DNA of 63,378 nucleotides from Octopus bimaculoides (Eukaryota), in assembly GCF_001194135.2 (NCBI RefSeq), contig NC_068981.1, forward strand, positions 109,376,113 through 109,439,490, given 5' to 3'. The first letter of the stretch is position 1. Each line of letters starts with the position of its first letter. Under the pieces are notes generated by a model. That model was given only the letters and a program-made list of their open reading frames with translations, was not told the DNA's origin and searched no databases. This document shows positions 2,658-63,378 of the stretch, piece after piece. Position numbers and translations under genes: made by a program.

Positions 2658-3017
2658 NNNNNNNNNNNNNNNNNNNNNNNNNNNNNNNNNNNNNNNNNNN
2701 NNNNNNNNNNNNNNNNNNNNNNNNNNNNNNNNNNNNNNNNNNNNNNNNNNNNNNNNNNNNNNNNNNNNNNNNNNNNNNNNNNNNNNNNNNNNNNNNNNNN
2801 NNNNNNNNNNNNNNNNNNNNNNNNNNNNNNNNNNNNNNNNNNNNNNNNNNNNNNNNNNNNNNNNNNNNNNNNNNNNNNNNNNNNNNNNNNNNNNNNNNNN
2901 NNNNNNNNNNNNNNNNNNNNNNNNNNNNNNNNNNNNNNNNNNNNNNNNNNNNNNNNNNNNNNNNNNNNNNNNNNNNNNNNNNNNNNNNNNNNNNNNNNNN
3001 NNNNNNNNNNNNNNNNN
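2658..3017. other. Assembly gap (360 N) after a (TA)n tract
   Basis: N run. Confidence 1.
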
Positions 3018-8177: not shown

Positions 8178-9246
8178 CTGAAAAGGAGGGAGAAAAATAT
8201 TGTATTAATTTCTTTTATTACATTAAAAGTTAAAAAGTTTTTTGGTGTATTTCTGATGACAGAAACAACTTACCCAGTGCTTGGAGACTTAAGGGTATCT
8301 CTAATAAAATCCAGTATATAAGCTATGATATTGAAACTGAGTCCTCAGTGCAATTTCTTTGAATATTTGAAATTGTTTCATTTTGCTTGTTGAATGCAAG
8401 TAGGAGGGGAGGGAGGGGGTGTTTGTTTATGTTTAATATGCTAGATTAAGCAGAGAACTGGATTTGAATGGCAGCTAAATCCTCCCTTACCACACAATTA
8501 GTAGAAGTTCAGTATGTATGGACATTATTACTTATACAGTGTAGTCAACACCAACTCAAGATTTGGTTAAAGTTGCTATGATGATATAAATGATCAATAT
8601 GACCAAATATACATAGAATACAAGAATAATGCTCTAACATATATTAAGCAGTATTTAAGAATACACTTAATTCAAATCTTTGGACAGCTTTTAAAGGGGC
8701 AACACATTAGCTAAACATCAACCAAGTTTTTATCTCTAAAAATAATTTAAAGTAAAAGAAATAAAGATGCATTTTATCTGCAAGATCTGGTACATTTAGG
8801 TACCCAATAATATTTGTATAAAATTCTAAGTGTGAAAAATTAGTTTTAAAATATTAATTTTCACTGTATTTTAGTAAAACCATTATCACTGTAACTATAA
8901 ATCAACACTTTTTTTTTACTAAAAGCAAAAATCTTAATTTCTTTAATAGCAAATTGGTAAAAATAGAGAGTGTAGTCTAAGTAATTTAATGTCTTTAGTA
9001 TCATCTCTAAATGTTCTGAGTTCAAACACCACCATCTGAACTAACTACTTTTCAATCAAAAATCCCAAACCACTAACAAAAATGCATTTTTGCCAACATA
9101 AAAAAAGACTAATGATATCTACATTTTAAAGAAAATTCAATGTTTTTCAATTGCAAATCTCTGTAACTCCCCAGTGATTGCTACCTAAGGGTTCCACTTG
9201 TAAACAATGGGACTAAAATAGAAACAAAATACACCTATAACAGTTC

Positions 9247-10200
9247 ACATCATCATTTAACGTCCGTTGTCCATGCTGGTATGGGTTGGATGGTCTGATC
9301 AGGGCTAGCAATCTGGAAGGTTGCACCAGATTCCAGTCTGATTTGGCATGGTTTCTACAGTTAGATGCCCTTCCTCATGCCAACCACTCCTAGGGTGTAA
9401 TGGGTGCTTTTACATGCCACCAGCATGGGTGCCATTTGCATCACACCAGTATCTCCCACAGCTGCAATTTTACTTGGCTTGATGGGTCTTCTCAAGCATG
9501 ATATAATGCCAAAGGTTTCGGTCACTCACCATTACTTCCGTGAAGCCCAACACTTAAAAGGAGCTTTTCACATGCCACTGGCATCGGTCACTTTGTTTCC
9601 ATGAGACCCAACACTTGATAGGTGCTTTTTATGTGCTACCAGCTTGACGGGTCTTCTCAAGCACAGCATATTGCCAAAGGTCTCAGTCCCTCTTCATTGC
9701 CTCTGTGAGGCCTAAAGTTCAAAGATCATACTTCACCACCTCATCCCGTGTATTCCAGGGTCTATCTCTACCACAGGTTCCTCCACAGTTAGAGATCGGC
9801 ACTTCTTTACGCAGCTGTCCTCGTCCATATGCATCACATGACCATACCAGTGCAGTCATCTCTCTTGCACACCACATCTGATGCCTAACTTTTCTCTCAA
9901 GATTCTTACACTCTGCCGAACATGCACATCCAGTGAAACATACTGGCTTCATTTCTTTCAAGCCTACGCATGTCCTCAGCTGTCACAGCCCATGTTTCAA
10001 GCCGTGTAGCATAGTTGTTTGCACACAAGCAACATACAATCTGCCTTTCACTCTGAGGGAGAGGCCCTTTGTTGCCAGCAAAGGTAGGAGCTCTTTGAAC
10101 TTTGCCCAGCCTATTCTTCTCACAGCTACGCTCTCTGAGCATCCACCTCCACTACTAACTTGATCAACTAGGTAACAGAACCTATCTACTTCCTCTAGCT
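9247..10200 (-). mobile_element. 5'-truncated RTE (C-terminal ORF remnant plus 3' UTR)
   Basis: LETWAVTAEDMRRLERNEASM and GRDRPWNTRDEVVKYDL on the minus strand; catcatcatttaacgtcc terminus. Confidence 0.9.
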
Positions 10201-11160
10201 TACCCCACTGGCAGATGATAGAGTTTATTTTCTGTACATTTTCCTCTTCATATATTTACATTATCAGAGTTGAGAAGAGTTACCTCAACAACAACTACCA
10301 GTAATAGTATTATACCTAATAGAAATAACATTATGCAAATCAATAGATTAACAAATACCATATTCAAAAGGATAATCTTTCAGCAAACCAAGCCGAAAGA
10401 CTGTCTTTGATACCCTGTTATGACTTGTTCACTTTACTTAGAAAGCTCATGTTCTTGGGAAGTTACAAACATCATAAACACTTCCTTCATGCACTTTAAC
10501 AATTCTAATATCACTTTGACACATTTGATTACAACAAAACAAAAACAAAACATTTGGTTATTTATAAGATTTTCATATACAAACCAATCAAAAAAGTACA
10601 GAATCATCTCTATTCCTACTGAACATTATGATTTTAGTTGATATTATTTGTAAATCTTGAAGAGTACAGGTAGTTTTACACCTGTAAAACAATGATTGTT
10701 GCAGTGGTGCAGTAACTACTGTTATGGTAGTTTAACAGTTTTGAAAAGTTTGGTTATGGACTAGCAATACCGAAACTGCATACTAATTACAATCATCATT
10801 GTACTTACATCTACTTTTTCCAAGTTGGCAAGGGCTGTATGATACTTTTTGAGGCAGTATTCTATAGCAGGACAACCCTTGTTTTTCACACAAGGCACTT
10901 TAATCAACATCAGTTCATAATGAATTGCAGCAGGGTATTTTATAGATGGGAGATGTGTCTTCCATTGAAGTAGTGTCAAGAGATGTGGATACAAACACAT
11001 AGACATGACTGGTAGCCAAACAGTTATCTACCAATTTCATTCACAAGGCTATATACAGTAGAAGATATTGCCCAAGATGTCTTTAATGTACAATATCAAT
11101 CACACATAAACAGTGTGTGTGTGCTTTTATTTATACACCAAATTTGCTGCAGGTTATTAG

Positions 11161-13894: not shown

Positions 13895-14442
13895 CTGGTA
13901 CAATAAAAAAGGAGAAATTAATAAATCAAATAGGCAAGACAAAGGCAGATAAGAAGTAAAAAAATGGGAGGGAAAATTTAGAACATGAAAAGAATATTTC
14001 ATCAAGAAATCAAGATTACATGCTTTTCAAAAATTTTGCATGCATTTAGCTCATACAGAACAAATTATATTTAAATTTATATAATGCCTCAGAATAACAT
14101 TCATCAGATATATATTACACAATTTTTTCATTATACAATGCAAGCACAGGAATATCAAATTTCATTCAAGTCCTGACATGTATCTATTTAATTAGCTCAC
14201 AATAATAATTAATCAATAGTTCATACAAAGCAAATCAATATTTCCTAAGAAGTTTTAGCTTTGAATTTTGATGACAAATCATTGATTAATGAATTTTAAA
14301 TGATCAAATTTTCTAACTACTTGTTAATAAAAACTATTTCCTAGATGTTCTAATTGCTGTTGACTTTAATCAAAGATAGAAAATTTTAGTCAAAATTTTG
14401 GAAACTTAAGATGGGAAAGAAAAGAACATTGTAAATTCTTGC

Positions 14443-14635
14443 CTAATTTTCTCCGCTTGCATGCTTTCATCAAGTGATGGCCCTACAGAACAATGAGCAG
14501 CTGCCTGTTGCTGCTTGGTGCTATACTTGTTGTATAGAGATCGCCTCTTCAACACACAACAGTGCAGTTTGTTTTGCATAAATACCACTGATTGATGAGG
14601 AATATTTACCAACTCCAAAATCTGCTTGCAATAAC
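14443..14635 (-). CDS. USP54: Coding exon 13: YCKQILELVNIPHQSVVFMQNKLHCCVLKRRSLYNKYSTKQQQAAAHCSVGPSLDESMQAEKIR
   Basis: Acceptor ttttttgtcacag, phase 1. The best phase-2 donor is AG|GCAAGA (GC donor); a weak GTATAG upstream is the alternative. 193 nt. Confidence 0.85.
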
Positions 14636-16019
14636 CTGTGACAAAAAGAACATAAAAATTATTGTTTTCATCTTCTACCTTTGATAATCTCAGAATATTT
14701 TGGTGAAACTAAAATACATTTAAAAATGTTGCTTTCTAATGAGTAATCTTATGTTTTAAGAAATGAGGAACTGTAAACAAAATATGTAACATACAAGACT
14801 TACAGATATAATTATTTCTATTTTATATTCAGCTGTTGAGATGGACAAGAGAGCATTTCTAACTGTCAATATCACATAAGACCTCTTTTGAAGAAGAACA
14901 CTGAGCTTTTAGTTGTCTTGCTAATGTCTACAATGTCTACATCTCTTACTGATATATAATGTTGAAATATATATGTAATGAAAATCACTTTGAAATCTTG
15001 GTTTTGGGTTCAGTCTCAGTGCTCCATGTTTAGCAAATATCTTTTACTATAGCGCTGGACTGACCAATGCCTTCTGAGTAAATATGGAAGATTAAAATTG
15101 TGCCAAAGGTTATCTCTTACTGTTTGACAACTTGTGTCCCTTGGTGTATATCCTTAGCAGTTTAATAAAAATAGACAAAGAATAAGTACCAGACTTAAAG
15201 TAGTGGGTTTGATCTGGTTAACTAAACACTTCAAGACTACACCAACATGGCCACAGTCCAATGACTATACCAGTTAAAGGCTAAAAGAATGAGACAGGCA
15301 CAATTTCCTTTTACCAAATTCCACTGACAAGATATCTGTCAACCCTACTCTGTAGTAGCAGGTACACTTGCCCAAGGTGCTGCTCAGAGGGATCAAACTT
15401 GAATCCAATTGGTTGCAAAATGAACTTCTTAACCATAAAAACATGCCTGTACTGATGCCATCTGATATCAGTTCTATTTCTATTCGAGTTACAGAGCTGA
15501 TCAAATGGTAGAATATCAATAAAAATGAAACATTAAGTTTGGTGTTAATGATTATTGATAATTTTCTTTTGTTAGACTGACTGCCAACATTAATGGTGTG
15601 ATGAGTTACCATCTGCATTTTATAAAGAAAGCTATCTATTTCATTAGTAAAACAAAATTCATTTACTAATACATTTTGTAAATACTTCAGTCTTTGACAC
15701 AAACCTCCTGTACTACATTTTAAAATTCATTGGTATTATCTGACAATACTGTATATTTCATATTTATTTTCCAGTTGTTTCATCACTAATATGCCTTTCA
15801 TCTTCTTGCAAATCAATGAATATAACTCGTTTCCACTCACTTTGCACTTTGGGAGATCACTCTGATACTTCATCATGACTATGTTTCTCTCTCTTTCCAG
15901 TTCCATCCTGGATACTCCCACCCTTTCTTCTATAACGTGAGTAGCCATGTAGCTTCTCTACAGCCTCTTCTCTCATCTCCTACCATATACCTCTCTCTAC
16001 TATCGGCCCACTCAGCCAA

Positions 16020-16175
16020 AGGGAGTTTTAGTCTTACAAATTGCATGGTGACCTCACTAGCGCTCGGGCCATGAAAAAAGCGCCCAGGACACACTGTAAA
16101 GTGATTGGCATTAGGACTGACATCAAAGCAAAGAAACCATGATGAAACAGACACTGAAGCACAATGCAGTCCCAG
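16020..16175 (+). mobile_element. Diverged RTE-tail-type repeat immediately upstream of the LRRC45-like exon
   Basis: gtgacctcactagcgct...aaaaagcgcccaggacacactgtaaagtgattggcattagg. Confidence 0.6.
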
Positions 16176-16202
16176 ACTATTTATCAAACAACTGTTTGAC
16201 TA

Positions 16203-16380
16203 GTCTGTCTTGAATGGAATGACTCTGGCATACTGGAAACACCATTCATCGTATTTTGTGATGGTCTTCAAGCTAACTGCAACCTCAAGCAACTTGATAT
16301 CAGAAATAACCAGGTCACCCACCATGGAACCAAACAGCTGGCAGAAGCATTATCAACAAACAAGACCCTTCAAGTCATTG
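16203..16380 (+). pseudogene. LRRC45: Orphan LRRC45-like leucine-rich-repeat exon: VCLEWNDSGILETPFIVFCDGLQANCNLKQLDIRNNQVTHHGTKQLAEALSTNKTLQVI(D)
   Basis: 59 stop-free codons followed by G|GTAAGT; aligns by eye with human LRRC45 LTLEWNSLG...[43 protein letters not shown]; no other exons found. Confidence 0.75.
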
Positions 16381-16599
16381 GTAAGTAATTATCGTTAACA
16401 TTTAAGTAATTTAATTATTATTTGAATAACTATAATCATCATTTAAATAATGTTAGTATTCAATTCAGCAATCATAGATATCATTTGTGTAATTATAATT
16501 ATCATCAAGTAGTTATGATGGGGTTTATCTCCTATGTAATGTAGTGATTATGTAGCGCATAAAATGATGGTGCAGTGTTTGCAGGTTGAAGGCTATTGT

Positions 16600-18975
16600 A
16601 AGTTTATGAGTTCTGCTAAATGTGATGCTGCTGTCCCCCATCCCAGGGTCTCAAGGGCCCACACCTCCCACACCCTCAGAGGTGGCACACTGAAAGGTAG
16701 GTCTGGTGAGATTGTTGTTATGCTTGAACGGAGACATGTAGATTCGTGCTGCATCCAAGAAGTAAGGTGGAGAAGTTCTGCTAGGTTCCTCACAGGCAAA
16801 GAACATAGGTATAAGATTTTCTGGGCAGGGAACACTGACAGGGTCGAGGGTGTGGGTATATTTCTTGCAGAGAAATGGGTTGATAAGGTAATCGGGGTAG
16901 TCAGAGTCTGTGATAGAATACTTAAGATTAGATTAGTGTTACAACATGGGTTGGCAACCATTATCTTGGCTTATGCCCCTCAGCCAGGGCTACCTGATGA
17001 ACAGAAAGATCGATTTTATGACACCCTCTTGCAGACTACCTCGTTGACAAATGATAGGGACCTTCTCTTTGTGGCTTGCAACTTCAGTGGGCATGTTGGA
17101 CAACATGCAAAGGGTTTTCATGGCATACATGGAGGCTATGGTTTTGATTCCCCCATTGAGGAGGGGACCAGGCTGCTGGAGTTCTACGGTGTAAATGATC
17201 TTATGGTTTGTAATACTAACTTCAGGAAACCTGCCAGTCATCTATTCACCTACCGATCTACTGGACACAGTAGTCAAATTGACTACATCCTTGCCAGGAA
17301 ACAGGAAAGATGGCTACTTATAAATGCCAAAACTTTCCCAGGTGAAGAATGCACCCTACAACATAGATTAGTAGCTAGCAACTTCAAGATCAGGGCTAAA
17401 TGGATGCCCAGAAGATGATCAGCATGGAAAAGAAGGGTCTGGAAGCTTAAGGGTCTTGCTAATGGACAGAAATTTAGAGACGTATTACTCGAAACTTTTG
17501 ACAAAATAGAGGAGGATATGGCATCACATGATGTGAAAGACAACTGGAGGTTCCTACTCTAATAGTCACTATCAGAATTATCAGAACTAGAGGAGACATT
17601 TCAAGTGTGGAAGCAAGGTCTAGAATCGAAGGGCCTTAGAGTCAATCTAGCAAAAACCAAAGTCTTAAAAAGTAGGAAGGCAAACAAATCACAAATCCCT
17701 TCAGGTAGATGGCCCTGCTCAATCTGTAGAAAAGGCGGAGGTAGAAACTCCATATGATGTACCCAGTGTAAGCTATGGACATATAAGAGGTTATCAATAT
17801 CAAAGGAAGGCTAACTGGAAAGATAGTTTTTGTATGTGGCAAATGCTCAGGGGCAATAAACACTGAAAATGTGTAGAAAACAGCTTGTCACATGCTAGGG
17901 GAAAAAACTAGAAGTAGTTGATAGATTCTGTTACCTAGGTGACCAAGTCAGTAGCTGGGGTGGATGATCTGAGAGTGTAGCTGCTAGAATAAGAATAGTC
18001 TGATCAAAGTTCAGAGAGCTCCTGACAAAGGGCCTCTCGCTCAGAGTAAATGGCAGACTGCATGATGCATGTGTACAAACAGCCATGCTACATAGCAGTG
18101 AAACATGGGCTGTGACTGCTGAGGACATGCATAAGCTTGCAAGGAATAAAGCTAGTATGCTCTGTTGGGTGTGTAATGTCAGTGTGCATACACGAAAGAG
18201 TGTAAGCACCCTGAGTGAAAAGTTGGACATAAGAAGCATCAGAGTCAGTGTGCAAGAGAGACGACTGTGCTGTATGGTCATATGTTGCGCATGGATGAGG
18301 ATAGCTGTGTGAAAAAGTGTCACACCCTAGCAGAAGGAACCTGTGGAAGAGGTAGACCAAGGAAAACCTGGGATGAAGTGACGAAGCACAACCTTTGAGC
18401 GTTGGGCCTCATGGAGGCGATGACAAGTGACCGAGACCTTTGGAGATATGCGGTGCTTGAGAAGACCTGGCAAGCCAAGTGAGACCATAACCGTGGTCAG
18501 TGCAGCATAACCAGCCCATTTAAGAATACTCCTCAATCATTGGGCAATAAACCGCGCTTGTGAAGACCTGTTAAGTCAAGTGAAATCATTGTCATGGCTG
18601 ATGACAATGTCACCTGATTGGCACTCATGCCAGTGGCACATAAAAAGCACCATTCGAGTGTGGTCGATGCCAGTGCCACCTGATTGGTCCTGTGCTGGTG
18701 GCACATAAAAAGCCTGACTGGCTGCCATGCCGGTGGTGTGTAAAAAGCACCATTCAAGTGTGGTCAAAGCCAGTACCACCTGATTGGCCCTCGTGCCAGT
18801 GACACATAAAAAGCACCCACTACATTCTCAGAGTGGTTGGCATTAGGAAGAGCATCCTGTAGAAACTCTGCCAGATCAGATTGGAGCCTGGTGCAGCCAT
18901 CTGGCTTGCCAACCCTCAGTCAAACCATCCAACACATGCCAGCATGGAAAGCAGACGTTAAACAATGATGATGAC
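16600..18975 (+). mobile_element. RTE-clade non-LTR retrotransposon, internally deleted and decayed
   Basis: AP-endonuclease ORF 16564-17418 (CIQEVRW, AYAPQ, DYIL). Jumps near 17556 to the end of RT, then a Cys-rich segment and SETWAVT...RWYGHV...GRGRPRKTW-like C-terminus. 3' UTR ends in (GAT)n. Confidence 0.92.
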
Positions 18976-19475
18976 AATGATGTCCAACCCTTGCGTGCAT
19001 GGAACATGGATGATGACAATGATGAAGATTCATTCAACTGACTACACCCCTTCCCTGTCAAATATCACCCTCATTTCTTTTCTCCTAGATTCTTGAATTT
19101 GGCATGTTCTCTTTAGAGCAAATTCATTCATTCTATCTTTACTTTCACCCCAACAACATTAGCAGGCGTTGCAGGGTACTCGAACTAATCTCAGTCTTCA
19201 GAGCAATGAGCAGTTGCATCACCTTTCTCTTTCTAGCTAAGATGTTAGTCTAGTGATATCTAAAAAGATTGGGCCTAAGAAACAAACCCATGCAACTAGC
19301 TGAAAACGAACTATTCATCAAATTATCCTTATAAAAATATAATAAATACACCAAAACCTCCTTTAACAAATTTGCTTTTCTCTAGAATGAAGGTTTTCTT
19401 CATTTTGTGCCTGGTGATTTTAGGTTACTAACTAATAAATGAAGTTTATAGAGCAGAGCATGCGTGTGAACTTAC

Positions 19476-19604
19476 CAATAGCTTTATCACAATCACAAAT
19501 GGCACAACGAAGGTCTCCTTTAGCTTCAGCTGCCAGGCAATTATCCATCATATTATCCGCTTGAAGACAACAATACCTGATGTATTCATCTTCAGAAGTT
19601 GGGC
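19476..19604 (-). CDS. USP54: Coding exon 12: PTSEDEYIRYCCLQADNMMDNCLAAEAKGDLRCAICDCDKAI (MIT-like, first part)
   Basis: Acceptor ttttgtcctcttttag, donor GTAAGT, phase 1/1, 129 nt; resembles the E-xx-GDL-xx-A-xx-C-xx-A helix of USP54. Confidence 0.9.
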
Positions 19605-20489
19605 CTAAAAGAGGACAAAAAATGGTAAATATTGAGAATGAATTAAAACTTAGAGACGTACTATTTTACCTACTAATGTTCTTCCTCAGAAAATTATCAA
19701 TGGGGGGAGATAGTTAGGTTAGTGTCAAGATAGAATAGACAGATAATTCACAAAAACAGGAGCATATACTAAATCTGGAGAAGTAAGAAAGAGCTGGTGA
19801 ATGACACTACTTTGGATGCCTTGAAATGGTTATTATTACATTGATGACTCTGCAAAGACATGCCAATCAGGTAATAGATGACACTGGATATAACCAAGGG
19901 GAACTGTAATGTCATGGAAGATTGGGAGAGGCTCAGGGTCAAGTGAATGTGAGCAAACTAGACTTGATGAAAGATTAGTATTTTTCTGGTCTGAAATTAA
20001 CTTCTAACCTAGAGATAAAATTCAGTTTCAGCCATGAGTAGAATGGATGGTTTTCATGGGAGATTGACAAAGATTGTGAGTCTTAACGGAAATAAACAAA
20101 ATTTAAAAAAAAACAAACGTATACCTTTGTTTCCTTGCATGGAATTCATATTATTCTGGATGCCACTTTTAAAATTTATCAAATCATTACCATTGGCAGG
20201 ACTTGGATTTGGATGTGGCGAAATAATTGCTTTAGTTTTGGCATCTAGAAAAATGATTTTCATACCTTTAGCAAGTGATTTACACAATAATTACATGAAG
20301 TATATCAACATATTTAACACAAAAACCTTAACACACAATAGTACACATAAGAAGAAGAAATGAAACAATCTAAACAATCGAAAGAATAGCTTTTACATAA
20401 TTATAATCTCATTATTCAAATCATTGACATCTGCTAATGAGAGTCAAATACACTTTATTATAACAGGGCAATGCTTAAAATATTGGGTG

Positions 20490-21330
20490 GTGTGGATTAT
20501 GGTCTTGTCACCAGCATCGTAAATCAGGTAGTTGATGAAGGAGTCATACTTAATGACTGATGTAGCAGCACCATAGTCAACTGCTACAAGGGGAAAGGTG
20601 ATGCTTTAGATAGAAATAATTACAGGGATATCAAATTATTGGATCAGGTGATGAAAGTTACAGAGAGGGTCATAGCCTAACTAATTAGGGAGAGAGTTAA
20701 TCTAGATGAGATGCAGTTCGGTTTTGTGCCAGGAAGAAGCACCAATGAAGTTATATTTCTGGTGAGGCAACTGCAGGAGAAATACCTAGCCAAAGATACT
20801 TTGTACTTGGCTTTTGTTGACTTGGAGAAAGCCATTGACAGAGCCCCCTCGATCCCTTATCTGCTGGTCAATGTGCAAACTGGGGATAGACAAGTGGCTG
20901 CACAAGCTCTATACAGGGACACTGTCAGTAAGGTGAGGGTGGGTAATGAGTTCAGGGAATTCCTACCTCTGCTGGTAAGTAAGGGCCTCTCGCTCAGGGT
21001 GAAAAGCAGACTGTAATGATGCATGTGTGAAAACTGTCATGCTACACAGCAGTGAAACATGGGCCATGAATGCTGAGGACATGCATAAGTTTGAAAGAAA
21101 TGAAGCTAGTATGATCCACTGAGTGTGTAATGTCAGTGTGCATACACGACAGAGTGTAAGTGCCCTGAGAGAAAAGTTGGGCATAAGAAGCATCAAATGT
21201 GGTGTGCAAGAGAGGTGATTGTGCTGGTATGGCCGTGTGTTACGTATGAATGAAGACAGCTGTATGAAGAAGTGCCACCCACTAACTGTAGAAGGAACCT
21301 GTGGAAGAGGTAGACCCAGGAAGACCACCT
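20490..21330 (+). mobile_element. RTE fragment: RT core (NYRGIKLL, MQFGFVPGRST, AFVDLEKA) fused by deletion to the C-terminal region
   Basis: ORFs 20711-21016 and 21219-21533; closely similar to 18030-18370. Confidence 0.9.
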
Positions 21331-21599
21331 CATCCCATGTCTTCCAAAGTATTGAAGTGTTTCAAAGTCAGAAGTTATATCATTATCACTTAATGTCTGT
21401 TTTCTTTGCTAACATGGGTTGGACAAAAAAGAAAAAAGAGAATGTTAAAGAAAGAGATGAAAGGTTTGATTGTAGCTGTGCAATCAGAACAAGATACATG
21501 AGGAAGACTTGGCTGATACCGTTTTTGATATAAAAAAGAGAAAAGACATTTATCTGCATATAGTTTCTAAATCAAAATAATGGTTGCTCAGAGTGTCTA

Positions 21600-21990
21600 T
21601 GAGAACTAGAGACAAGATTGCTATTGACAAATCTGTAAAAACATATGAAAAAAAATGCTATGACCATAAAACAAAATATTCTTTTGAAAATGACCATGTA
21701 ACTGTACTATGGGATATGAAATTTCAAATAGATAAGCAAACAGGATTGCCCATTTCATTTGAGACTGGTAAACAAAAGAACATGAGAAAACAGAAAAATA
21801 CCAGGAGCTGAAATATGAACTTCAAAGAATCTGAAATTTTCATAAAGTTATCATTATCCCAATTATAATAAGAGCCCCAAGAATAGTTACAAGTAGTTTG
21901 AATGGCTGACTGAGGATGTTAGCTATCAAGAATTTTTTTACTTTACAGAATTCTGATTGGTTAGTACAGCAAGGACTATAAGAAAGGCGC
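21600..21990 (+). mobile_element. Remnant of an R4/Dong-like non-LTR element (restriction-like endonuclease end)
   Basis: ENDHVTVLWDMKFQIDK followed, after frameshifts, by EKYQELKYELQRI and KVIIIPIII. Confidence 0.65.
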
Positions 21991-23042
21991 AAGATACCTA
22001 AGGTTGCAGTATTCAGTTTGATATCTAACAATCTAATACCAACAGAACAACAAAATTCTGAATGAATGAAAACAACAATAATGCTTTCTGATTTAGGTAC
22101 AAGGCAATTTTGAAAGGTGAGGCTTAGTCGACAACAATGACACCAGTACTTGACTGGTACTATATTTTATTGACTCTGGTGGGATTTGAAATTAGAATTT
22201 ATAATAAACAAAGAAATACTGCAAGGCATTTAGCTTGATGTTCTAACAATTCTGCCAGCTTGCTGCCTTTATAACAACAGTATCAATAACAATATTTTGA
22301 AAATTATATTATACTGCTGTGTCTTTGAGAAACAGATATGAGAAATTCCTATCATACAAAATACAAAAATGATAAGATACTGATTAAGCAACACAACAGA
22401 AAAACTATTAGCCACAACAAAAATACAGACTGTTCGTCAATAAAAACTGTTTTAATTGCAGGGGTAAATCTCAGAAATTGCGATTAACAAAGAAATATTT
22501 GTAATTGAGCTCCCAGCAGATCAATCAAAACAGAATATGAGAAAAAATAACAGCTGAATTTCAAATTAACAAAAAAATTATAGAGTAACAAAACCATAAC
22601 CATGTTATGGAAACAGTTTGCTGAAACAAACAAGACAATAATAATAATTGTTTCCTATGGGAGGTAGTGATATTCATACCTTTTGCAGTGACATGAATAA
22701 CATAAGTAAGCAAGTTTTGATAATTATCAGGTCAATCATCATGAAACATATCAGGAATTTTAAAGAGAATTTCAGTGTCCAAAACATTCCAACTGAAGTT
22801 ATAAGTTCTTGTCACTGGTAAAGCAAAATATTGGAGTTAAGCACTGGACAATTCCTACCATTCAGTAGAAAAACTGAGAACAACTGAGAAAATTAGAGAA
22901 TGGTTTGTCTATAATAGCAAGATCAAATTCTCACATGGAAGAATAAAGAAATCAAACTCACTAGTAAGAACAAACTTGGCTGCATATCACCAATTTAAAA
23001 GTGAACATACTTGAAAAGAAAAAAAAAAAAGCACTTGCTTAC

Positions 23043-24749
23043 CTCGTACAATATGTCCACTTAATGGTTTGTCAGGAAGTATCTTTTTCCCTTGTTGCAT
23101 TAAAGAAGATTTAATATCCATTGAAACATTCTCACAGATCAGATCTGTTAAAAATGTATTACTTGGATATAGAGGCTCGTTTAAGATACTGTCAATGCTA
23201 CCTTTCCTTCCAAGGTACATGTTTTTGTTGCCTGTTCTGTTACCTATATTTCCAGCAAATCCAGAATAAACACTATTCTTTTCCACATTTGAGGAAAACT
23301 TTTGATTTTCCGATAGAGAAAGTGACTGGATACCCTTGCTAGGCAAATATTGGCCGTAAGGATCCATAGTGATACTACTTGATGAACTGGAACTATTTCG
23401 GTCACTGCTTCCATAACCTGAATCCCTTTGAGATTCTAATGATACCCTATCATACGGAATTTCAAGTGTAAGTGCTTCACTCAGTTCAGTTGCCGAGGCA
23501 ATATTTCCCAAGCCATTCAAGTTTTCTTTGATTCTGTTAGAATGACGCAAGCCATTAATTGTACCTTTTGGTGGCTTTGTATAGAGTTTCTTCATGACAT
23601 GCTCAACAGTTTTACGATCAATATAGTTTTCCTGGCTATAGCTGTCTTCATGGTCTTGGGAAGGAATTTTATATGTTCTGTCTTTAGAAACATAAGTTTC
23701 ATTATTAGGAGAAGCCAGTGAATGAGCAGAAATACTTCTGATCATATTTCCTGGTTTTGGAATGCTATTTGAAGAATGATTAAAACTGGGATGATTAGAA
23801 CGATATCTGTTGTATTGATGTCCATTCTCAAATCTTGGTGGAGTCTGACATTTTAGAGAGACTGATGGGCGAGAATAAGATAACTGTGCCTGTTGGCTTA
23901 ACTGTTTCTTTTCCTTGGCTGAATCTTTATTTCTTGGTAATGTTGCTAGACCCGAATGCAAAGGACCAGCACATTTAATATTCTCATAATAATTGTCTTG
24001 CTGCGTACTTTGTACAGTTGGTTTGACAATCAAGTGGCTGTGTTTAATATTATCATAAGCTTTACTTTGTGTTTTATAAGTGTCTCTTGGTGGACTCGTA
24101 ACATCACGATATTTAGAATCAACTGAGTGAAGAACATGACTATCTATAGGTTTTCTATACCCAAAATCATTTGGTGTACTTCCTTCAGTTATAAAGTTTT
24201 CAGAATGGACATTTTCAAAAGATTTATCCCTCAATGATGGAGATGAACGTCTTTGAGCTGAAAAGTCAGACAGGTTGCTTCTTTGAACATTGTAAACTCC
24301 ACCATTACAACTGTTTGAGTTGGATGAATTATAAAATGAAGCTTGGAGTCTTCCTTCGGTACATATGTACTCTCCTAGCAGGTTCTGGTCAACAGATTCT
24401 GATGCAATGCTGCTTGGCTTTGATGATGGATTACTCACAGATGGAGACAATGAACGGATCAAACTTACTGAATCCAAAGGAAAACTCTTAACACTTGAAT
24501 GATTGGATGCTGTATCATCAGATCCTGAAACAGCTGTCAGAAAACTAGCTTGTCTTTGATGTTCAGCATTGCTTGATGTTACAGAATCCCTGTCTAAATC
24601 CTTTAATCGATAATAGGTTTCTGGACCTGGTGTTATAGATCTTCTATGCTGAAAAGTTGGATCTATGTAGCAGTGCATGTCTGGTGTAGGGGTAACTGCT
24701 CGGCGGATATCTGCTGATTGACTTCTAAGTATACCTGCACCAGTTGAGG
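23043..24749 (-). CDS. USP54: Coding exon 11: 1707-nt Ser-rich disordered region
   Basis: Lies within the 598-aa ORF 22987-24783; acceptor ttttgataatttcag, donor GTAAGC, phase 1/1; contains DSGYGSSDRNSS. Confidence 0.92.
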
Positions 24750-26036
24750 CTGAAATTATCAAAATAAAGAAATTAATGTCCATATTAATGTCTTTATCAG
24801 TATGAATATGCTAGCAATATCAAGTATTATGTTACTTATTGTGCTTGCATGTAAAGTTCAAAATAACTGAGAATCTATATCATTCAGGTTGTTCCCACTA
24901 ACTTTCATACATATGTTCAAGTGTTAGTCTTGAAGTCACAATTGATATCATTAACATAATGAAGCAATGATATGAAGAACCACATTCGTATGCCTCAAAA
25001 TAATAATACTTTTTAAATGAGGGGTTTCCATAGAACTTGCAAATAACTATTATAATAGCTATCATAATTACAAAAATCAGTGGAGTAACAGAAGTAGTGT
25101 TCTAAACTGAATGCCTTACTGTATTAAACTACATCTCTATTACATTATCAGTTGAAATGCCTCTGAGGTTGACTTTACCTACTGTTTATTCAGGGACAAT
25201 AAATTGAATATTGGGCATATATTGAGATGACTCAAGTGACAATAGCTACTCCTTGAAAATTAGTGGAGGTTTAATACCAATATAAATAAAATAACAAACA
25301 TAAACACCATCACATCTGATTTTTCTAAATTTGCATAGGTTGGACAGGTAAGTAAACAATATATTTTCAATTTGACCCCACTATCTTTAATCATATCAGC
25401 TCATCTTTGGAGCTGTAACTGTTTTATTCAGCAATAATCCATCAGGAATTCATAATTTACCATAGCAGTTACTACTATGGCTGGTATCAGATGATGGTTT
25501 TGATTGCCAAACGAGAAAATATTACAGAGCTGGGTTAACAGCTGCCGCACTAGACTTAATGTATTATTGAAAGGAATAGGTAAAAATGGGATGCTTTTAT
25601 TTCTATAATCTACAACAATGGAAAGTAATTCTCTGAATTTAGTTCCCAGCGGGAAGTGGTTAAGAGAGAGAGAATAACAAAGAGAGAAAAATGTGTATAA
25701 AGAAAGATAGAATGATAAATGAAACAGAGAAAGCAGATGTAGTGACTATTTCTCCTGAAAGTAGAGATTGTTTTCTTCTGAATAGTCATTATAAGTCGAA
25801 GAAACTATTATGTGGAACCATCACAGGTGTTATATTTTGAAGTTATAATTGACACAGCACCAAACATTGACAATGAGATTGGATGCACTGATGCAGCAGC
25901 TGTCATGAGTTGATGCACTCCCGATTTTTATAGCCAAGAGTTAGAGTAGCCACTGTAGCCAGGAGCTGCTAAAGTTATTTTAGGTTAGATAAATAATTGT
26001 AGGTAGAAACAAAAGGCATGTAGAAAACATACTTAC

Positions 26037-26184
26037 AGTTATTGTAACCCGGAGCCATTACAGTTTTCCGAGGGGCTTCAGCAACATTAATAGGAGTAGC
26101 ATTAGGATTGGCATAGATTAATAAAAGGGGCTGATAATGACCACGGCAACATTTTTCTACAACAGAATCCCAGCTAGGACCCAT
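26037..26184 (-). CDS. USP54: Coding exon 10: MGPSWDSVVEKCCRGHYQPLLLIYANPNATPINVAEAPRKTVMAPGYNN (end of USP domain)
   Basis: Acceptor atttttacag, donor GTAAGT, phase 0/1, 148 nt. Confidence 0.95.
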
Positions 26185-26518
26185 CTGTAAAAATAAATAT
26201 ATAAATAAATTACAACATGAATATGAAAACAATATTCTCTATAAATTAAGAGTTATTGAGTTTTATTTTTATCTCTTTTTAAGCTGAAGTTTACTGCATT
26301 AAAGTTATTTTTCTGGTTATCTTAGAAATAAAAGTGATTATAATTATAATGACAAATAATTTGTATGAATGATTATAATGGCTACAATGCATAAATAATT
26401 ATTATAGCTACCATTATTATCATTGTTATCACAATCACTGTCAAGTAACTTCTTTTGAAATAGAAATCAAGGATTACAATTAAACAAACAAAACAAAAAC
26501 ATAAGACTGATTACCAAC

Positions 26519-26662
26519 CTCCTTAACTGTGGCATCATCAAAGTAATACCACGACCGATCTCTTGAATGGAAGACAAAGGTAGAATAGTGTTTCCCATAG
26601 TAACAGACAATACCAACTAAATGCAGTTGAGCCAGGTCTCTGATTTTGGAACAATGGAACAT
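26519..26662 (-). CDS. USP54: Coding exon 9: [48 protein letters not shown], His box (H299) and Asp (D316/D317)
   Basis: Acceptor cctctgtag; donor GAG|GTTGGT is required for phase 0 with the next exon; 144 nt. Confidence 0.95.
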
Positions 26663-27565
26663 CTACAGAGGATTAACAGAAATAAGCAAAAGTGTTTTTA
26701 TCCATTAGACATATTCATTTCTTTCTTGGGAACAAAGTAAATTGTCTAATAGTTGAATGATAAATCTCATTTATAAATTTTATTGATATATGAAAGTCCT
26801 TGCAGCATCTGCTAATGGAACCTATCAGGACACTACTGCCTATTGTAATGCATGTAGTCCAGTGTTCAACTGTCTATCAGGTTTTACCTAATAAAACGCT
26901 AGTTTTACATTATTTCCTTGCTGTTAGGATAAAGGTTAGCACAGTGCATAAAGAGAACTAGATAGTACAGAATGTGAAACTATAAACAATATTTTTTTTA
27001 CCAAATGTCTACAATATCTAAGGGGAGCAGAATTTGACTAATATGCTCTTCTATCAATGATTTAGGAGAAGTGCAATGGAAACAAACAGAAATATTGATA
27101 AGATGAGGTTTAGCAATTTTGAAGCCACATACAGCTTCAGCTACTTATGAGATTTCTCGTTACATTATATTTGGACAGCTTTTGTAAGAATTATCAAGGT
27201 AAGATTTTATGATTATTATTAAAGAAGTCAACAGTACTCAATGTGGTGATATTGTAGATTGAAGATATTGTGTTTCCCAGGGTTTGTACTGTCTGTCAAG
27301 TCACAAGGACCTCAGACAGACACTACTTTACACAGTATGCATGCAGTTCCAAAAAGCTGATTTTTGCAATACACCAAGATTGTAAGGTATTTTTAAAGTG
27401 TCATGGCAAGCTGGCAGAATTGCTAGCATGCCAGGTAAAATGCTTAGCAACATTTTGTCCATCTTTTTGGGGTCGACAAAATAAGTACCAGCTGAGTACT
27501 AGGTTTGATGTAACAGACTTACCCCTTCCCCCCCAACTTGCTGGTCCTGTATCAAAATTTGAAAC

Positions 27566-28060
27566 ATCATCGTCGTCATCATTTAACGTCCACTTTCCAT
27601 GCTAGCATGGTTTGGACGATTTGACTGAGGACTGGCGAACCAGATGGCTGCACCAGGCTCCAATCTGATTTGGCAGAGTTTCTACAGATGGATGCCCTTC
27701 CTAACACCAACCACTCCGAGAGTGTAGTGGGTGCTTTTACGTGCCACTGGCACAAGGGCCAATCAGGCAATACTGGCAACAGCTACGCTCAAATGGTGTT
27801 TTTTACATACCACCTGCACAGGAGTCAGTCCAGCGGCACTGGCAATGACCTTGCTTGAATATTCTTTCATGTGCCACCGGCACAAGTGCCAGTAAGGCGA
27901 CACTGGTAATGATCACACTCGAATGGTGTCTTTTATGTGCCACCAACAACGGAAGCCAGTCAGCTGCTCTGGCAACGATCACGCTTGGATGATGCTCTTA
28001 GCGCTCCACAAGCACAGATGCCAGTGATCGAATTTGATTTTGATTTCACTTGCCTCAGAC
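27566..28060 (-). mobile_element. RTE 3'-UTR-derived repeat copy
   Basis: catcatcgtcgtcatcatttaacgtcc...ggatgcccttcctaac...gtgccac subrepeats, shared with 9247, 36955 and 63017. Confidence 0.85.
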
Positions 28061-36945: not shown

Positions 36946-36954
36946 TATGACTAT

Positions 36955-37450
36955 ATCATCATTTAACGTCCGCTTTCCATGCTAGCATGGGTTGGACAAT
37001 TTGACTGGGGACTGACGAACCAGATGGCTGCACCAGACTCCCATCTGATCTGGCAGAGTTTCTACAGCTGGATGCCCTTCTTAACGCCAACCACTCCGAG
37101 AGTGTAGTGGGTGCTTTTTATGTGCCACTGGCATGAGGGCGAGTCCGGTGGTACTGGCAATGGCCACACTCAAATGGTGTTTTTTTACGTGCCACCTGCA
37201 CAGGAGTCAGTCCAATGTTTTGTTCACATGCCACCGGCACAAGTGCCAGTAAGGCGAAGCTGGAAATGATTGCACTCAAATGGTGCTTTTTATGTGCCAC
37301 CAGCACAGAAGCAAGACTGCTGCTCTGGCAGTGATCCTGCTCGGATGGTGCTGTTAGCGCTCCACTGGCACGGGTGCCAGTCATCGAATTTGGTTCAGTT
37401 TCGATCTCACTTGCCCCAACAGGTCTTCGCAAGCTGAGTTTAGTGTTCAA
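36955..37450 (-). mobile_element. RTE 3'-UTR-derived repeat copy
   Basis: Same family sequence as 27566-28060. Confidence 0.85.
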
Positions 37451-37648
37451 TGAAGGAAGGTTGGCATGGTGTTAAGTGTATACGTTCTTTCTAACACTTG
37501 TAAATTTATAATAATTTTCTCCTTCATATATTCGTTTTTGTTCCTATTCTTTTTTTATTGTCTCCCCTACCCCGGGCTAGTTTTTAAGTAAGGTAACTCT
37601 CTTGAATACACCAACTGGTCCTGTCTGTGATTGTTGCTTTTCCTTTAA

Positions 37649-39521: not shown

Positions 39522-39573
39522 NNNNNNNNNNNNNNNNNNNNNNNNNNNNNNNNNNNNNNNNNNNNNNNNNNNN
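39522..39573. other. Assembly gap (52 N) inside a (GA)n tract spanning about 39461-39617
   Basis: N run flanked by GA repeats. Confidence 1.
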
Positions 39574-50303: not shown

Positions 50304-52499
50304 CCCTTCGAATCCAAACCACCCACAGGAATTGAATGCACCACCCTAAGCTCTCAGCGAATTTCACTGAAAAGTTTTAATTTTAGGATACATGCTGAAA
50401 GACATGCTTGGTTCACAACACAAGGGTACAAAATAGAGAAAAATGATAAAATACAATATGTTCAAGTCTTTTTTCACTAATTTACCTCCAACACTGCACT
50501 TTGTTGTGCCAATCATGCCAGCAGTTTGATCCTGGTTTCCCAATACAGAGGAAAACTTTGCAGTGGTTACACCAGAAAATAGTCTTTGTTTTGGCAAGTC
50601 CTTATACTGAGCATTAGGATTTGCTCCCCTAGCCTGCCTATATTTCTCCATTTCTATATTTCAGCACAACAACTGTTTGTGGATGCATGTTCAGCTTGTT
50701 CCACCTCATGCAATCCAATGTCAACCAAACAATCCTCTGCAGTTGCTGGATGATCATGTCTTGCTTGGGGTACTGACTCTCACATCACCAATTAGTTCAT
50801 GACAAAGCTTATGCAAGAAAACATGGAACGTGAAGGTTCTTTTGTTGGGCTGGACATGAGGTTTGTAAAATTCCTGCAAAACAGGCATTATATGATATCC
50901 ACATAAAGAACTTCATCACTAATTGGCATGGTCGTTTGTAATGGCATCAACATTTTTGCAGGCATGTCATTTAGTTGTTTTTGTCTCTTCCTCCTATGAA
51001 GTTATTGTAACTCTTCACTGCTATCGGACAGGGGATAGGTACAAAACAAAATATATGGGGCGTTTGTTCATCCATACCATTGCTGCAACATTCCCACTGA
51101 ACAGAACCATTGATTCCTCTTTTTGAATTTACATGTTAGTTCTTTTGAGACACTTGGGAAAGAGTTTCTGTTGATCAAAGCTGGTCCACATAATCCTATG
51201 CCTTTATCCAATAAATATTCTGCAAGCTCAACTGATGTATAAAATCTGTCCATGAATAGTTCTGGGCCTGATACCCACTCCATCATTTGCACTACGAGAT
51301 TCCCTACGACATCCAAATTATCAACTGCTCAAGCATCCAGTCTCCTTCCAGTGTACACTTCAGCATTCACAATGTAACCATTTGCACTGTCTGTTAGCAA
51401 GAATGACTTCAAGCCCCAATGGATGGGTTTGTCTTTGATGGATAAGGCGTTTTTGGTTGGAATCATGTCTTCATCTAAAGATAGCTCACATTCAAGCACA
51501 AAATGTTTATGAAACCATGGCAAGATATAATAAATAATTAGCTGTGGCTTGTATATTTTATCTTTCTTATTTACATTAGGATCATCCTCATCAACACAAT
51601 ATAACTTTGACCATATAGCTAAAACCTGTCCCTTACCATGACCTGCCCAAATCCTGGAGTTGATGTCAAAAAGCTACCTTTTGTACACCAGTACTGATCA
51701 TATCTATCCTTATGAACTAACATCTCTATGGCAACCCTACAACCAAAGAAGGCCATCATCTCTTTTACTGTTGTGTCATACCATTTTTTTTTGTAGCATA
51801 TTGGACTTAGCAGCCTTGACATGTGCAGCCTTCTTATTACTTTCTCTAACCAAAATGTCCCAAAGCACATCGTCCCAAAATAGGGAAAGGAAATCCAAGG
51901 AGCTACTTTCTCCATTTATATGAGGTGGAATATCCTTTGGGCCTGTGGGGTAGTTAGGACTAAACTGTCATGCTATAAAACCAGCCATATCTCGTCTCCA
52001 GGGAACAAAAATATTCATGTTTACTACTGCCATCAAGCCTCTACCGTGCTCACCACAACACCCCATCTCGTATTAGCCTGGGATATTTGGGCATGCACTG
52101 CAGCATTGTCTACATTAGGTACAAGTTTACCGTGATCACTATCAGAATCACTGGGCAATTCTTCGCTAGTCTCTTTCTCAAAAACACTTTTGTTACCGTA
52201 ATCAGACTCATCTAAATCCTCCTCATCATCAATTAGAATCTGAGCTAGTGCTTCTTCAGCACTGACACATTTTGAAGACATTTTCAGCAAAATTCAAGCA
52301 CTAAATAAGGAATCCACACTAGAATATGTATGCTGAAGACCCAAAATAACACACTCACTAATTGGTTGCTATGTGACTCAAGTGGCTATTTTTATAGCGT
52401 GTAACAAAATGAAGACATGTGGAGTGCCAGTAGACCAGCATTTTGGGAATATACAGCCTTAGTGTAGTGCCAGTGCACTGGCATTTCGGGTTCTAGGGG
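50304..52499 (-). mobile_element. Near full-length degraded piggyBac element (PGBD4-like transposase)
   Basis: TTAA at 50300-50303 and 52500-52503; imperfect TIRs CCCTTCGAATCCAAA and CCCCTAGAACCCGAA; remnants LSLDEDMIP, KPIHWGLK and FMDRFYTS; acidic N-terminus from ATG 52281; Cys-rich C-terminus; frameshifted. Confidence 0.92.
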
Positions 52500-63016: not shown

Positions 63017-63378
63017 CAGTTAGCCCATTCTCTCACTGATGTCCACATTTTTTGCTGATATACATCATGAGATATATCATCATCATCATCATCGTTTAAC
63101 GTCCGCTTTCCATGCTAGCATGGGTTGGACGATTTGACTGAGGACTGGTGCAACCGAATGGCTACACCAGGCTCCAATCTAATTTGGCAGAGTTTCTACA
63201 GCTGGATGCCCTTCCTAACGCCAACCACTCAGAGAGTGTAGTGGGTGCTTTTACGTGTCACCCGCACAAAAACGGCCACGCTCGAAATGGTGTCTTTTAT
63301 GTGCCACCCGCACAAGAGCCAGTCCAGGGGCACTGGCAACGATCTCGCTCGAAAACCCTACAAGGCCAGTCAGGCAGT
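63017..63378 (-). mobile_element. RTE 3'-UTR-derived repeat copy (CpG-rich, probably young; runs off the window)
   Basis: (CAT)n cgtttaacgtccgctttccatgctagcatgggttggacg... Confidence 0.85.

Follow-up and report, generated by a model that had tools for sequence, protein, structure and literature searches.

The locus raises the question of whether an exon-like stretch on the + strand belongs to a second gene hidden within a gene of the opposite strand, or whether it is a relic and, if so, by which route it arrived. The window, i.e. the whole 63,378-nt stretch of Octopus bimaculoides DNA that was analysed, had been described in the first-pass annotation as containing, at 16203-16386, a stop-free + strand stretch that codes for leucine-rich repeats (LRRs) of the ribonuclease inhibitor (RI) type, resembles the centrosome-linker protein LRRC45, ends at a phase-1 G|GTAAGT donor, and lies between RTE-like sequences within a USP54 gene. 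These observations on the fragment were borne out by the results given below. The translation of 16203-16386, VCLEWNDSGILETPFIVFCDGLQANCNLKQLDIRNNQVTHHGTKQLAEALSTNKTLQVIGK, is free of stops, and GTAAGT and AT-rich DNA follow. The open frame alone is unremarkable, because the window contains 284 stop-free segments of at least 55 codons; homology is what counts.

Ribonuclease-inhibitor-like LRR units have about 28-29 residues (LxxLxLxxNxL...), and the fragment matched RI-type LRR proteins of the PDB (LRRC34, ribonuclease inhibitor, and the LRRs of NLRP proteins) with E values from 1e-13 to 1e-7. With the fragment alone, the Pfam family LRR_6 gave a weak match below the cut-off. A word-index protein search with the 60-aa fragment yielded no match, and an exhaustive HMMER search of representative proteins was needed to reach the LRRC45 proteins. 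The latter search led to a protein of 608 aa (P0030), whose residues 120-177 are matched almost perfectly by the fragment. This protein, two others (P0176 and P0174), and their cluster mates carry the names LRRC45 or LRRC45-like at NCBI/UniProt and stem from O. bimaculoides and O. sinensis; the more distant matches are the LRRC45 proteins of amphioxus, a hemichordate, and fish. When the window was searched by tblastn, the O. bimaculoides LRRC45 (P0176, XP_014769258) showed 94.9% identity over 59 aa (E 4e-31), and the value for the O. sinensis LRRC45 was 89.8%. Two LRRC45-family proteins from Logan contigs (P0153 and P0154) had values of 61-66%.

For comparison, the LRRC45 loci of O. bimaculoides (L001; CM046601.1:109.16-109.24 Mb) and O. 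sinensis (L002; CM016859.1) were analysed, both of which serve as proxies for the parent. Mapping the proteins back revealed that the true LRRC45 gene has 17 coding exons, spread over 52 kb and 77 kb, respectively. An intron-containing parent gene is present at another locus in L001 and L002, and no USP gene was called in either of them. The window fragment is a copy of exon 5 (16204-16380, + strand), encodes LRR repeats at residues ~118-177, and has a nucleotide identity of 97.7% to exon 5 of L001 over 171 nt. Its 3′ end is the exact exon 5 donor of the true gene, G|GTAAGT in phase 1, which is intact in the copy. The first-pass annotation had foreseen D as the next residue, encoded by a codon split as G|AT, and this is what the true gene contains. 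An ENA gene model of 112 aa from another assembly (P0128, on a contig of 390,960 bp) also contains an exon-5-like sequence, which is 69% identical to the window fragment and resembles P0153. It was modelled as a stand-alone ORF and continues beyond the octopus exon end (...AIG|TSFYV), illustrating that LRRC45 exon 5 is easily miscalled as an isolated gene.

One of the proposals made for the fragment had been a live exon of a large antisense LRRC45-like gene that is interleaved with the USP54-like gene. The open frame of 59 codons and a G|GTAAGT donor identical to the true exon 5 donor are compatible with this proposal, and cephalopod introns may reach tens of kb, with partner exons that could in principle be situated outside the window. 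However, exons 1-4 of the true gene are all located in the 7 kb that precede exon 5, and exon 6 follows ~6 kb downstream, whereas the 16 kb upstream and the 47 kb downstream of the fragment in the 63-kb window are devoid of any other LRRC45 exon. The search for sibling exons comprised tblastn with two octopus and two Logan-contig LRRC45-family proteins as well as blastn-short with all 17 O. bimaculoides exons; what we take to be the human LRRC45 sequence was an additional tblastn query, and it likewise uncovered none. A complete LRRC45, with its N-terminal LRR domain and long C-terminal coiled coil encoded by 17 coding exons, is not represented by the window copy, and it exists at another locus in two Octopus species.

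Further arguments come from the sequence directly adjoining exon 5. The nucleotides 16187-16203 (+ strand), AACAACTGTTTGACTAG, are the last 17 nt of LRRC45 exon 4. They are identical at 16 of the 17 positions to the exon 4 end of O. sinensis (AACAACTGTTTGACCAG, then gt; L002 15383-15399) and at 15 positions to that of O. bimaculoides (AACAACTATTTGACCAG, then gt). With up to two mismatches, this 17-mer has a single occurrence in the whole window, compared to a chance expectation of 0.03, and its position is the one expected in a spliced transcript. Intron 4 sequence was not found in the window, neither upstream of 16204 nor elsewhere. The exon 4 end is fused to exon 5 without intron 4, and therefore the template was an RNA that had lost intron 4 by splicing and still contained intron 5. 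The fragment is thus a partly processed retrocopy, in which the apparent acceptor “gactag|tc” is the exon 4-exon 5 junction.

This junction affects several of the initial statements. The doubt that had been voiced about the acceptor was justified. That the window holds no sibling exons is correct as far as any other exon is concerned, but the 17-nt remnant of exon 4 adjoins the fragment. In contrast, the argument that the retained donor speaks against a processed retrocopy fails, because the end of exon 4 is fused to exon 5; a retained splice donor does not exclude an RNA-mediated origin.

The junction is also the site of a frameshift. A deletion of 2 nt is present right after it (TCT--GTC in the copy versus TCTTTGTC), and the frames of exons 4 and 5 disagree; in the frame of exon 5, a TGA is found at 16197-16199. 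A usable splice acceptor with an intact frame into the exon is missing, as the upstream sequence, including the “ag”, is exon 4 sequence. Compared to O. bimaculoides exon 5, the copy contains an L to S replacement (two substitutions), an R to Q replacement, and one synonymous change, i.e. three of the four substitutions are non-synonymous. The L to S replacement affects a conserved LRR leucine (NDL), which is kept in the octopus LRRC45 proteins and in the two Logan-contig homologues. This leucine is presumably conserved also in human LRRC45. These numbers are small, and they give no apparent sign of purifying selection on the exon copy. With its acceptor, its frame, and a conserved leucine gone, and with a true 17-exon LRRC45 elsewhere and no other exon in the window, the fragment has hardly any chance of being a live exon.

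The homology to the LRRC45 locus extends well beyond exon 5. BLAST comparisons revealed that 16206-18981 of the window is colinear with L001 17110-21198 and with the equivalent stretch of L002. The shared sequence takes in exon 5, continues past the GTAAGT donor into the first ~140 nt of intron 5, and then runs through a LINE, which resides in this intron in sense orientation in both species. The intronic part (16381-16522, + strand, including the donor) matches only the start of LRRC45 intron 5 in L001 and L002, and it differs from L001 17285-17475 by four mismatches and one 11-nt indel. It is followed by the LINE copy (16523-18981, + strand), which is colinear with L001 17475-21198 and L002 18008-21060 and ends in the tail ...AACAATGATGATGACAATGAT; the homology of another RTE copy also begins at 16523. 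In every segment tested, the intron-5 copies of L001 and L002 are the closest relatives of the window copy, with 8-10% mismatches versus 11-20% for other copies. The RTE tail (18981) is the exact point at which the homology to the LRRC45 locus ends, and unrelated sequence follows in the parent intron. The Octopus LRRC45 genes (XP_014769258 and XP_029644324) and the window copy thus have exon 5, its phase-1 donor, the adjoining intron, and the RTE in common, with nucleotide identities of 88-98%. In contrast to these genes, the window copy contains only one of the 17 exons plus 17 nt, lacks the coiled-coil part, has a broken 5′ frame, and resides at a different locus. Intron 5 of O. sinensis harbours, ~25 nt downstream of its start, a lineage-specific SINE-like insertion with a (GAT)n end (L002 17433-17836), which is missing from O. 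bimaculoides and from the window copy.

A capture at the DNA level or a segmental duplication of part of the LRRC45 locus would explain the retention of the donor and of intron 5 sequence, as well as the colinearity with LRRC45 genomic DNA over 2.8 kb. However, a genomic copy would carry intron 4, of which no trace was found; instead, the end of exon 4, which in the genome precedes exon 5 by 1.8 kb, adjoins it directly. In addition, the copy ends exactly at the RTE tail, as expected of reverse transcription that was primed there. Because intron 4 was spliced out, DNA-level capture is ruled out in our view, and we grant it very little probability. The first-pass annotation had named a dead captured gene fragment as its second proposal. 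Its first half, that the fragment is dead, stands, but the capture at the DNA level does not.

The LINE fits the RTE type, as judged from its domain and tail features and from the octopus literature. Like RTE elements, it lacks poly(A) and has a short-repeat 3′ tail that is common to SINEs. Its 3′ end is a tail of the GATGAT type, and the window, L001, and L002 all contain numerous short, SINE-like copies of the ~200-270 nt of this tail. A reverse transcriptase (RT) domain (PF00078, E 4e-13) was found in the parent copy at L001 19466-19915, which is the part missing from the window, where an internal deletion of ~0.8-1.2 kb at ~17557-17579 has removed the RT core. The Exo_endo_phos match in the parent RTE copy (E 0.016) is below the cut-off. 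None of the RTE copies in the window, L001, and L002 is intact. The endonuclease-region ORF at 16564-17418 (+ strand, 284 aa) is open in the window copy and exceeds in length all ORFs that the two reference parent copies have retained. RTE LINEs have been described as abundant, transcribed, and recently active in Octopus (PMC9115989).

Further sequences of this type occur in the window. A second, separate RTE fragment at 20471-21326 (+ strand) spans the RT region, which the transduced copy lacks, and is 72-85% identical to the RTE copies of L001 and L002. Copies of the RTE/SINE tail family with lengths of ~200-500 nt are found at 9236-10243, 27559-28057, 36952-37471, and 63066-63353, with 72-93% identity to members of the family at the LRRC45 loci. 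These genomes contain very large numbers of such copies.

The flanks revealed the target of the insertion. On the 5′ side, 16031-16189 (+ strand) is the upstream half of an older, diverged 3′ tail of the RTE/SINE type, which has further repeat matches in the window, L001, and L002. On the 3′ side, 18982-19030 (+ strand; GTCCAACCC...GATGATGACAATGATGAAGAT) is the downstream half, which continues the tail consensus where 16189 stops. When the upstream half is joined to 18982-19060, the two align unbroken across the junction to the window's own RTE tail and to the O. bimaculoides tail, i.e. ATCAAAC, then (T)GTCCAACCC. Without interruption, the older tail would read ATCAAAC-TGTCCAACCC across the insertion point. 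The flanks reconstitute one older tail, and therefore ~16190-18981 (~2.8 kb) arrived as one insertion. At its 5′ junction, AAC (16187-16189) is common to the old tail and to exon 4 and represents a microhomology of 3 nt. Template switching was considered as the source of the upstream tail fragment and was rejected, because the downstream flank continues that tail exactly.

At this site, a target-site duplication is not visible, as the flanks rejoin without duplicated bases, and the copy, which ends with ...GATGATGACAATGAT, has no 3′ poly(A) tract. Both are acceptable for RTE-type elements, yet two classical hallmarks are gone. The identical 15-mer GATGATGACAATGAT is present in the new RTE tail (18962-18981) and in the old split tail (19008-19030), and the reference parents read GATGATGGTGATGAT or GATGATGATGATGAT at this site. 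The shared 15-mer could be due to chance, could be a tail variant of the true parent, or could be a trace of priming or repair at integration.

The structure of the locus could also be explained by an assembly artefact, in which reads from the LRRC45 locus or cDNA were joined to the USP54 locus. The region is rich in repeats, and the window includes two N gaps. However, these gaps are far off (2658-3017 and 39522-39573), the copy differs from both reference parents throughout by substitutions and indels, and the flanks reconstitute a single split repeat, as for a true insertion. An artefact is thus exceedingly improbable.

We propose that ~16190-18981 is the product of a single RTE retrotransposition, i.e. 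the 5′ transduction of a partly spliced LRRC45 pre-mRNA, which is 5′-truncated in exon 4 and non-functional, and we assign a probability of about 90% to this reading. The alignments themselves show that the copy is homologous to the source locus and colinear with it, that it contains a spliced junction and ends at the RTE tail, and that its target was split. From these, we infer the following order of events. The source would have been an RTE-type LINE that resided in intron 5 of the real LRRC45 gene in the sense orientation, and the template an LRRC45 transcript in which intron 4 was already spliced out and intron 5 with the RTE was still present. An RTE reverse transcriptase, acting in cis or in trans, would have initiated target-primed reverse transcription inside that RNA, at the 3′ tail of the RTE itself. 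Synthesis would then have proceeded through the RTE, ~140 nt of intron 5, and exon 5, and would have ceased after 17 nt of exon 4, resulting in the 5′ truncation. The cDNA would have been joined into the older RTE/SINE tail, with its 5′ end attached via the AAC microhomology. Work on the eel element UnaL2 reportedly indicated that “stringent” LINEs recognise their own 3′ end, with internal initiation at the element's tail.

LINE 5′ transduction is best described for human L1. There, as proposed here, non-element DNA directly 5′ of the source LINE is co-transcribed from an upstream promoter and both are retrotransposed together. In accordance with such an event, the passenger corresponds in order and sequence to what lies immediately 5′ of a source element that can be identified, the two are contiguous in the window, L001, and L002, and the copy ends at the 3′ end of the element, as a discrete insertion that splits an older repeat. 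Unlike in L1 5′ transduction, the element is of the RTE type, its tail is GATGAT-like instead of poly(A), a target-site duplication is not visible, and the flank underwent partial splicing, by which intron 4 was lost.

Retrocopies that are partly (semi-) processed form an established class (PMC5470649, citing Soares 1985; Baertsch 2008; Zhang 2014). The window copy resembles them in being derived from RNA, with a spliced exon 4-5 junction and a retained intron 5. However, classical members of the class are primed by L1 on the poly(A) of the mRNA and cover the 3′ end of the gene, whereas the priming site would here have been the tail of an RTE within an intron, and no sequence 3′ of that RTE was captured. 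A further parallel is the 5′ transduction by splicing of SVA elements, in which a MAST2 exon became attached to SVA_F1 (PMC6139936). In both cases a non-LTR element that had resided in an intron of the host gene was retrotransposed with spliced exon sequence of this gene at its 5′ end. In the SVA-MAST2 case, an upstream exon was spliced into an acceptor inside the element, whereas here the exon is linked to the RTE via a retained intron. Unlike SVA_F1, the window chimera exhibits no sign of propagation as a subfamily.

The copy is a non-functional relic, judging from the frameshift, the upstream stop, the missing acceptor, the lack of an LRRC45 promoter of its own and of other exons, and an RTE devoid of its RT core. 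Its divergence was analysed by a three-way comparison of site patterns between the window copy, O. bimaculoides, and O. sinensis. In exon 5 plus the unique intron (304 columns), the numbers of lineage-unique changes are 6 for the copy, 0 for O. bimaculoides, and 9 for O. sinensis. The respective numbers for the RTE part (1993 columns) are 126, 63, and 85. The divergence is thus uneven, with ~2% in the exon and unique intron versus ~9-10% in the RTE part. In all three lineages the RTE changes faster than the adjoining AT-rich intron, and G>A and C>T dominate. This looks like a faster, transition-dominated decay of the RTE that resembles CpG decay, to which we attribute the uneven divergence; alternatively, gene conversion among RTE copies may account for it. 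Hyper-editing of the template by ADAR was also considered as a cause of the higher RTE divergence and was rejected, as the changes on the copy branch are mainly G>A and C>T. A>G changes have no consistent excess on this branch (12 versus 3 T>C in one block, 8 versus 10 in the next).

The RTE part yielded a near-star tree, in which the length of the copy branch is about double that of O. bimaculoides (126 versus 63 sites). In the unique part, the copy clusters with O. bimaculoides (0 sites unique to O. bimaculoides versus 9 unique to O. sinensis), which places the source, as far as can be judged from this part, on the O. bimaculoides side. Across the LRRC45 locus, the orthologous divergence between O. 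bimaculoides and O. sinensis is ~4-7% mismatches. These values suggest that the insertion is not recent and that its age is of the same order as the split between O. bimaculoides and O. sinensis, a dating that is loose.

The surroundings of the insertion belong to another gene. The minus-strand sequence 34875-35159 matches the catalytic domain of human USP54 (PDB 8c61, E 1e-9), which makes a USP54-like host gene on the minus strand a reasonable assignment. The insertion is thus antisense within this USP54-like gene, probably in an intron. A retrocopy that is dead as LRRC45 might still have been co-opted, with its donor or the RTE providing an exon or a promoter to an antisense lncRNA or a chimeric transcript over USP54. 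The intact GTAAGT donor and the endonuclease-region ORF of 284 aa that is still open are in line with this, and TE fragments have been found to be pervasive in octopus transcripts and lncRNAs (PMC9115989). On the other hand, the copy has no sign of constraint, with three of the four exon substitutions non-synonymous and a frameshift, and a search of 14000-21500 with Rfam did not identify any family. We consider co-option quite unlikely.

The reading as a 5′ transduction of LRRC45 sequence removes a false lead, i.e. USP54 is not interleaved with a hidden antisense LRRC45 gene, and the fragment should be masked as a piece of a retropseudogene. The event is of an ordinary kind and a clean example of it, instructive rather than surprising. 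Its value is that of a traceable cephalopod case of 5′ transduction by an RTE-type LINE, in which the source element, the state of the template RNA, both junctions, and the target can be read. The expansion of TEs in cephalopods has been much discussed, and to our knowledge few mechanistic footprints have been described. A speculative extension, to which we attach a low probability, is that intronic sense RTEs move spliced host exons via host pre-mRNAs, a form of exon shuffling, and that the present copy may have been exonised antisense in USP54. If this were true, and common in the abundant cephalopod RTE/SINE families, it would be an unrecognised source of new exons.

Three additional features of the window were observed. 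The minus-strand stretch 22990-24810 is a stop-free segment of 607 codons without a Pfam domain. It is nevertheless conserved, with amino acid identities of 83% to a Logan contig and of ~44% to two further assemblies. Its matches are ORF calls only, and a named octopus protein was not returned; presumably, the segment represents a large exon of the USP54-like gene that codes for a disordered region. A contig from another octopod (L003, Logan SRR11869385) is orthologous to 21387-27149 of the window over 5.9 kb with ~10% mismatches, about twice the divergence of O. bimaculoides and O. sinensis at the LRRC45 locus, and it ends 2.4 kb short of the insertion. Lastly, a stop-free minus-strand stretch at 51332-51673 contains a transposase domain of the piggyBac type (PF13843, DDE_Tnp_1_7, E 9e-11) and is probably either what remains of a DNA transposon or a PGBD-like gene that has been domesticated.
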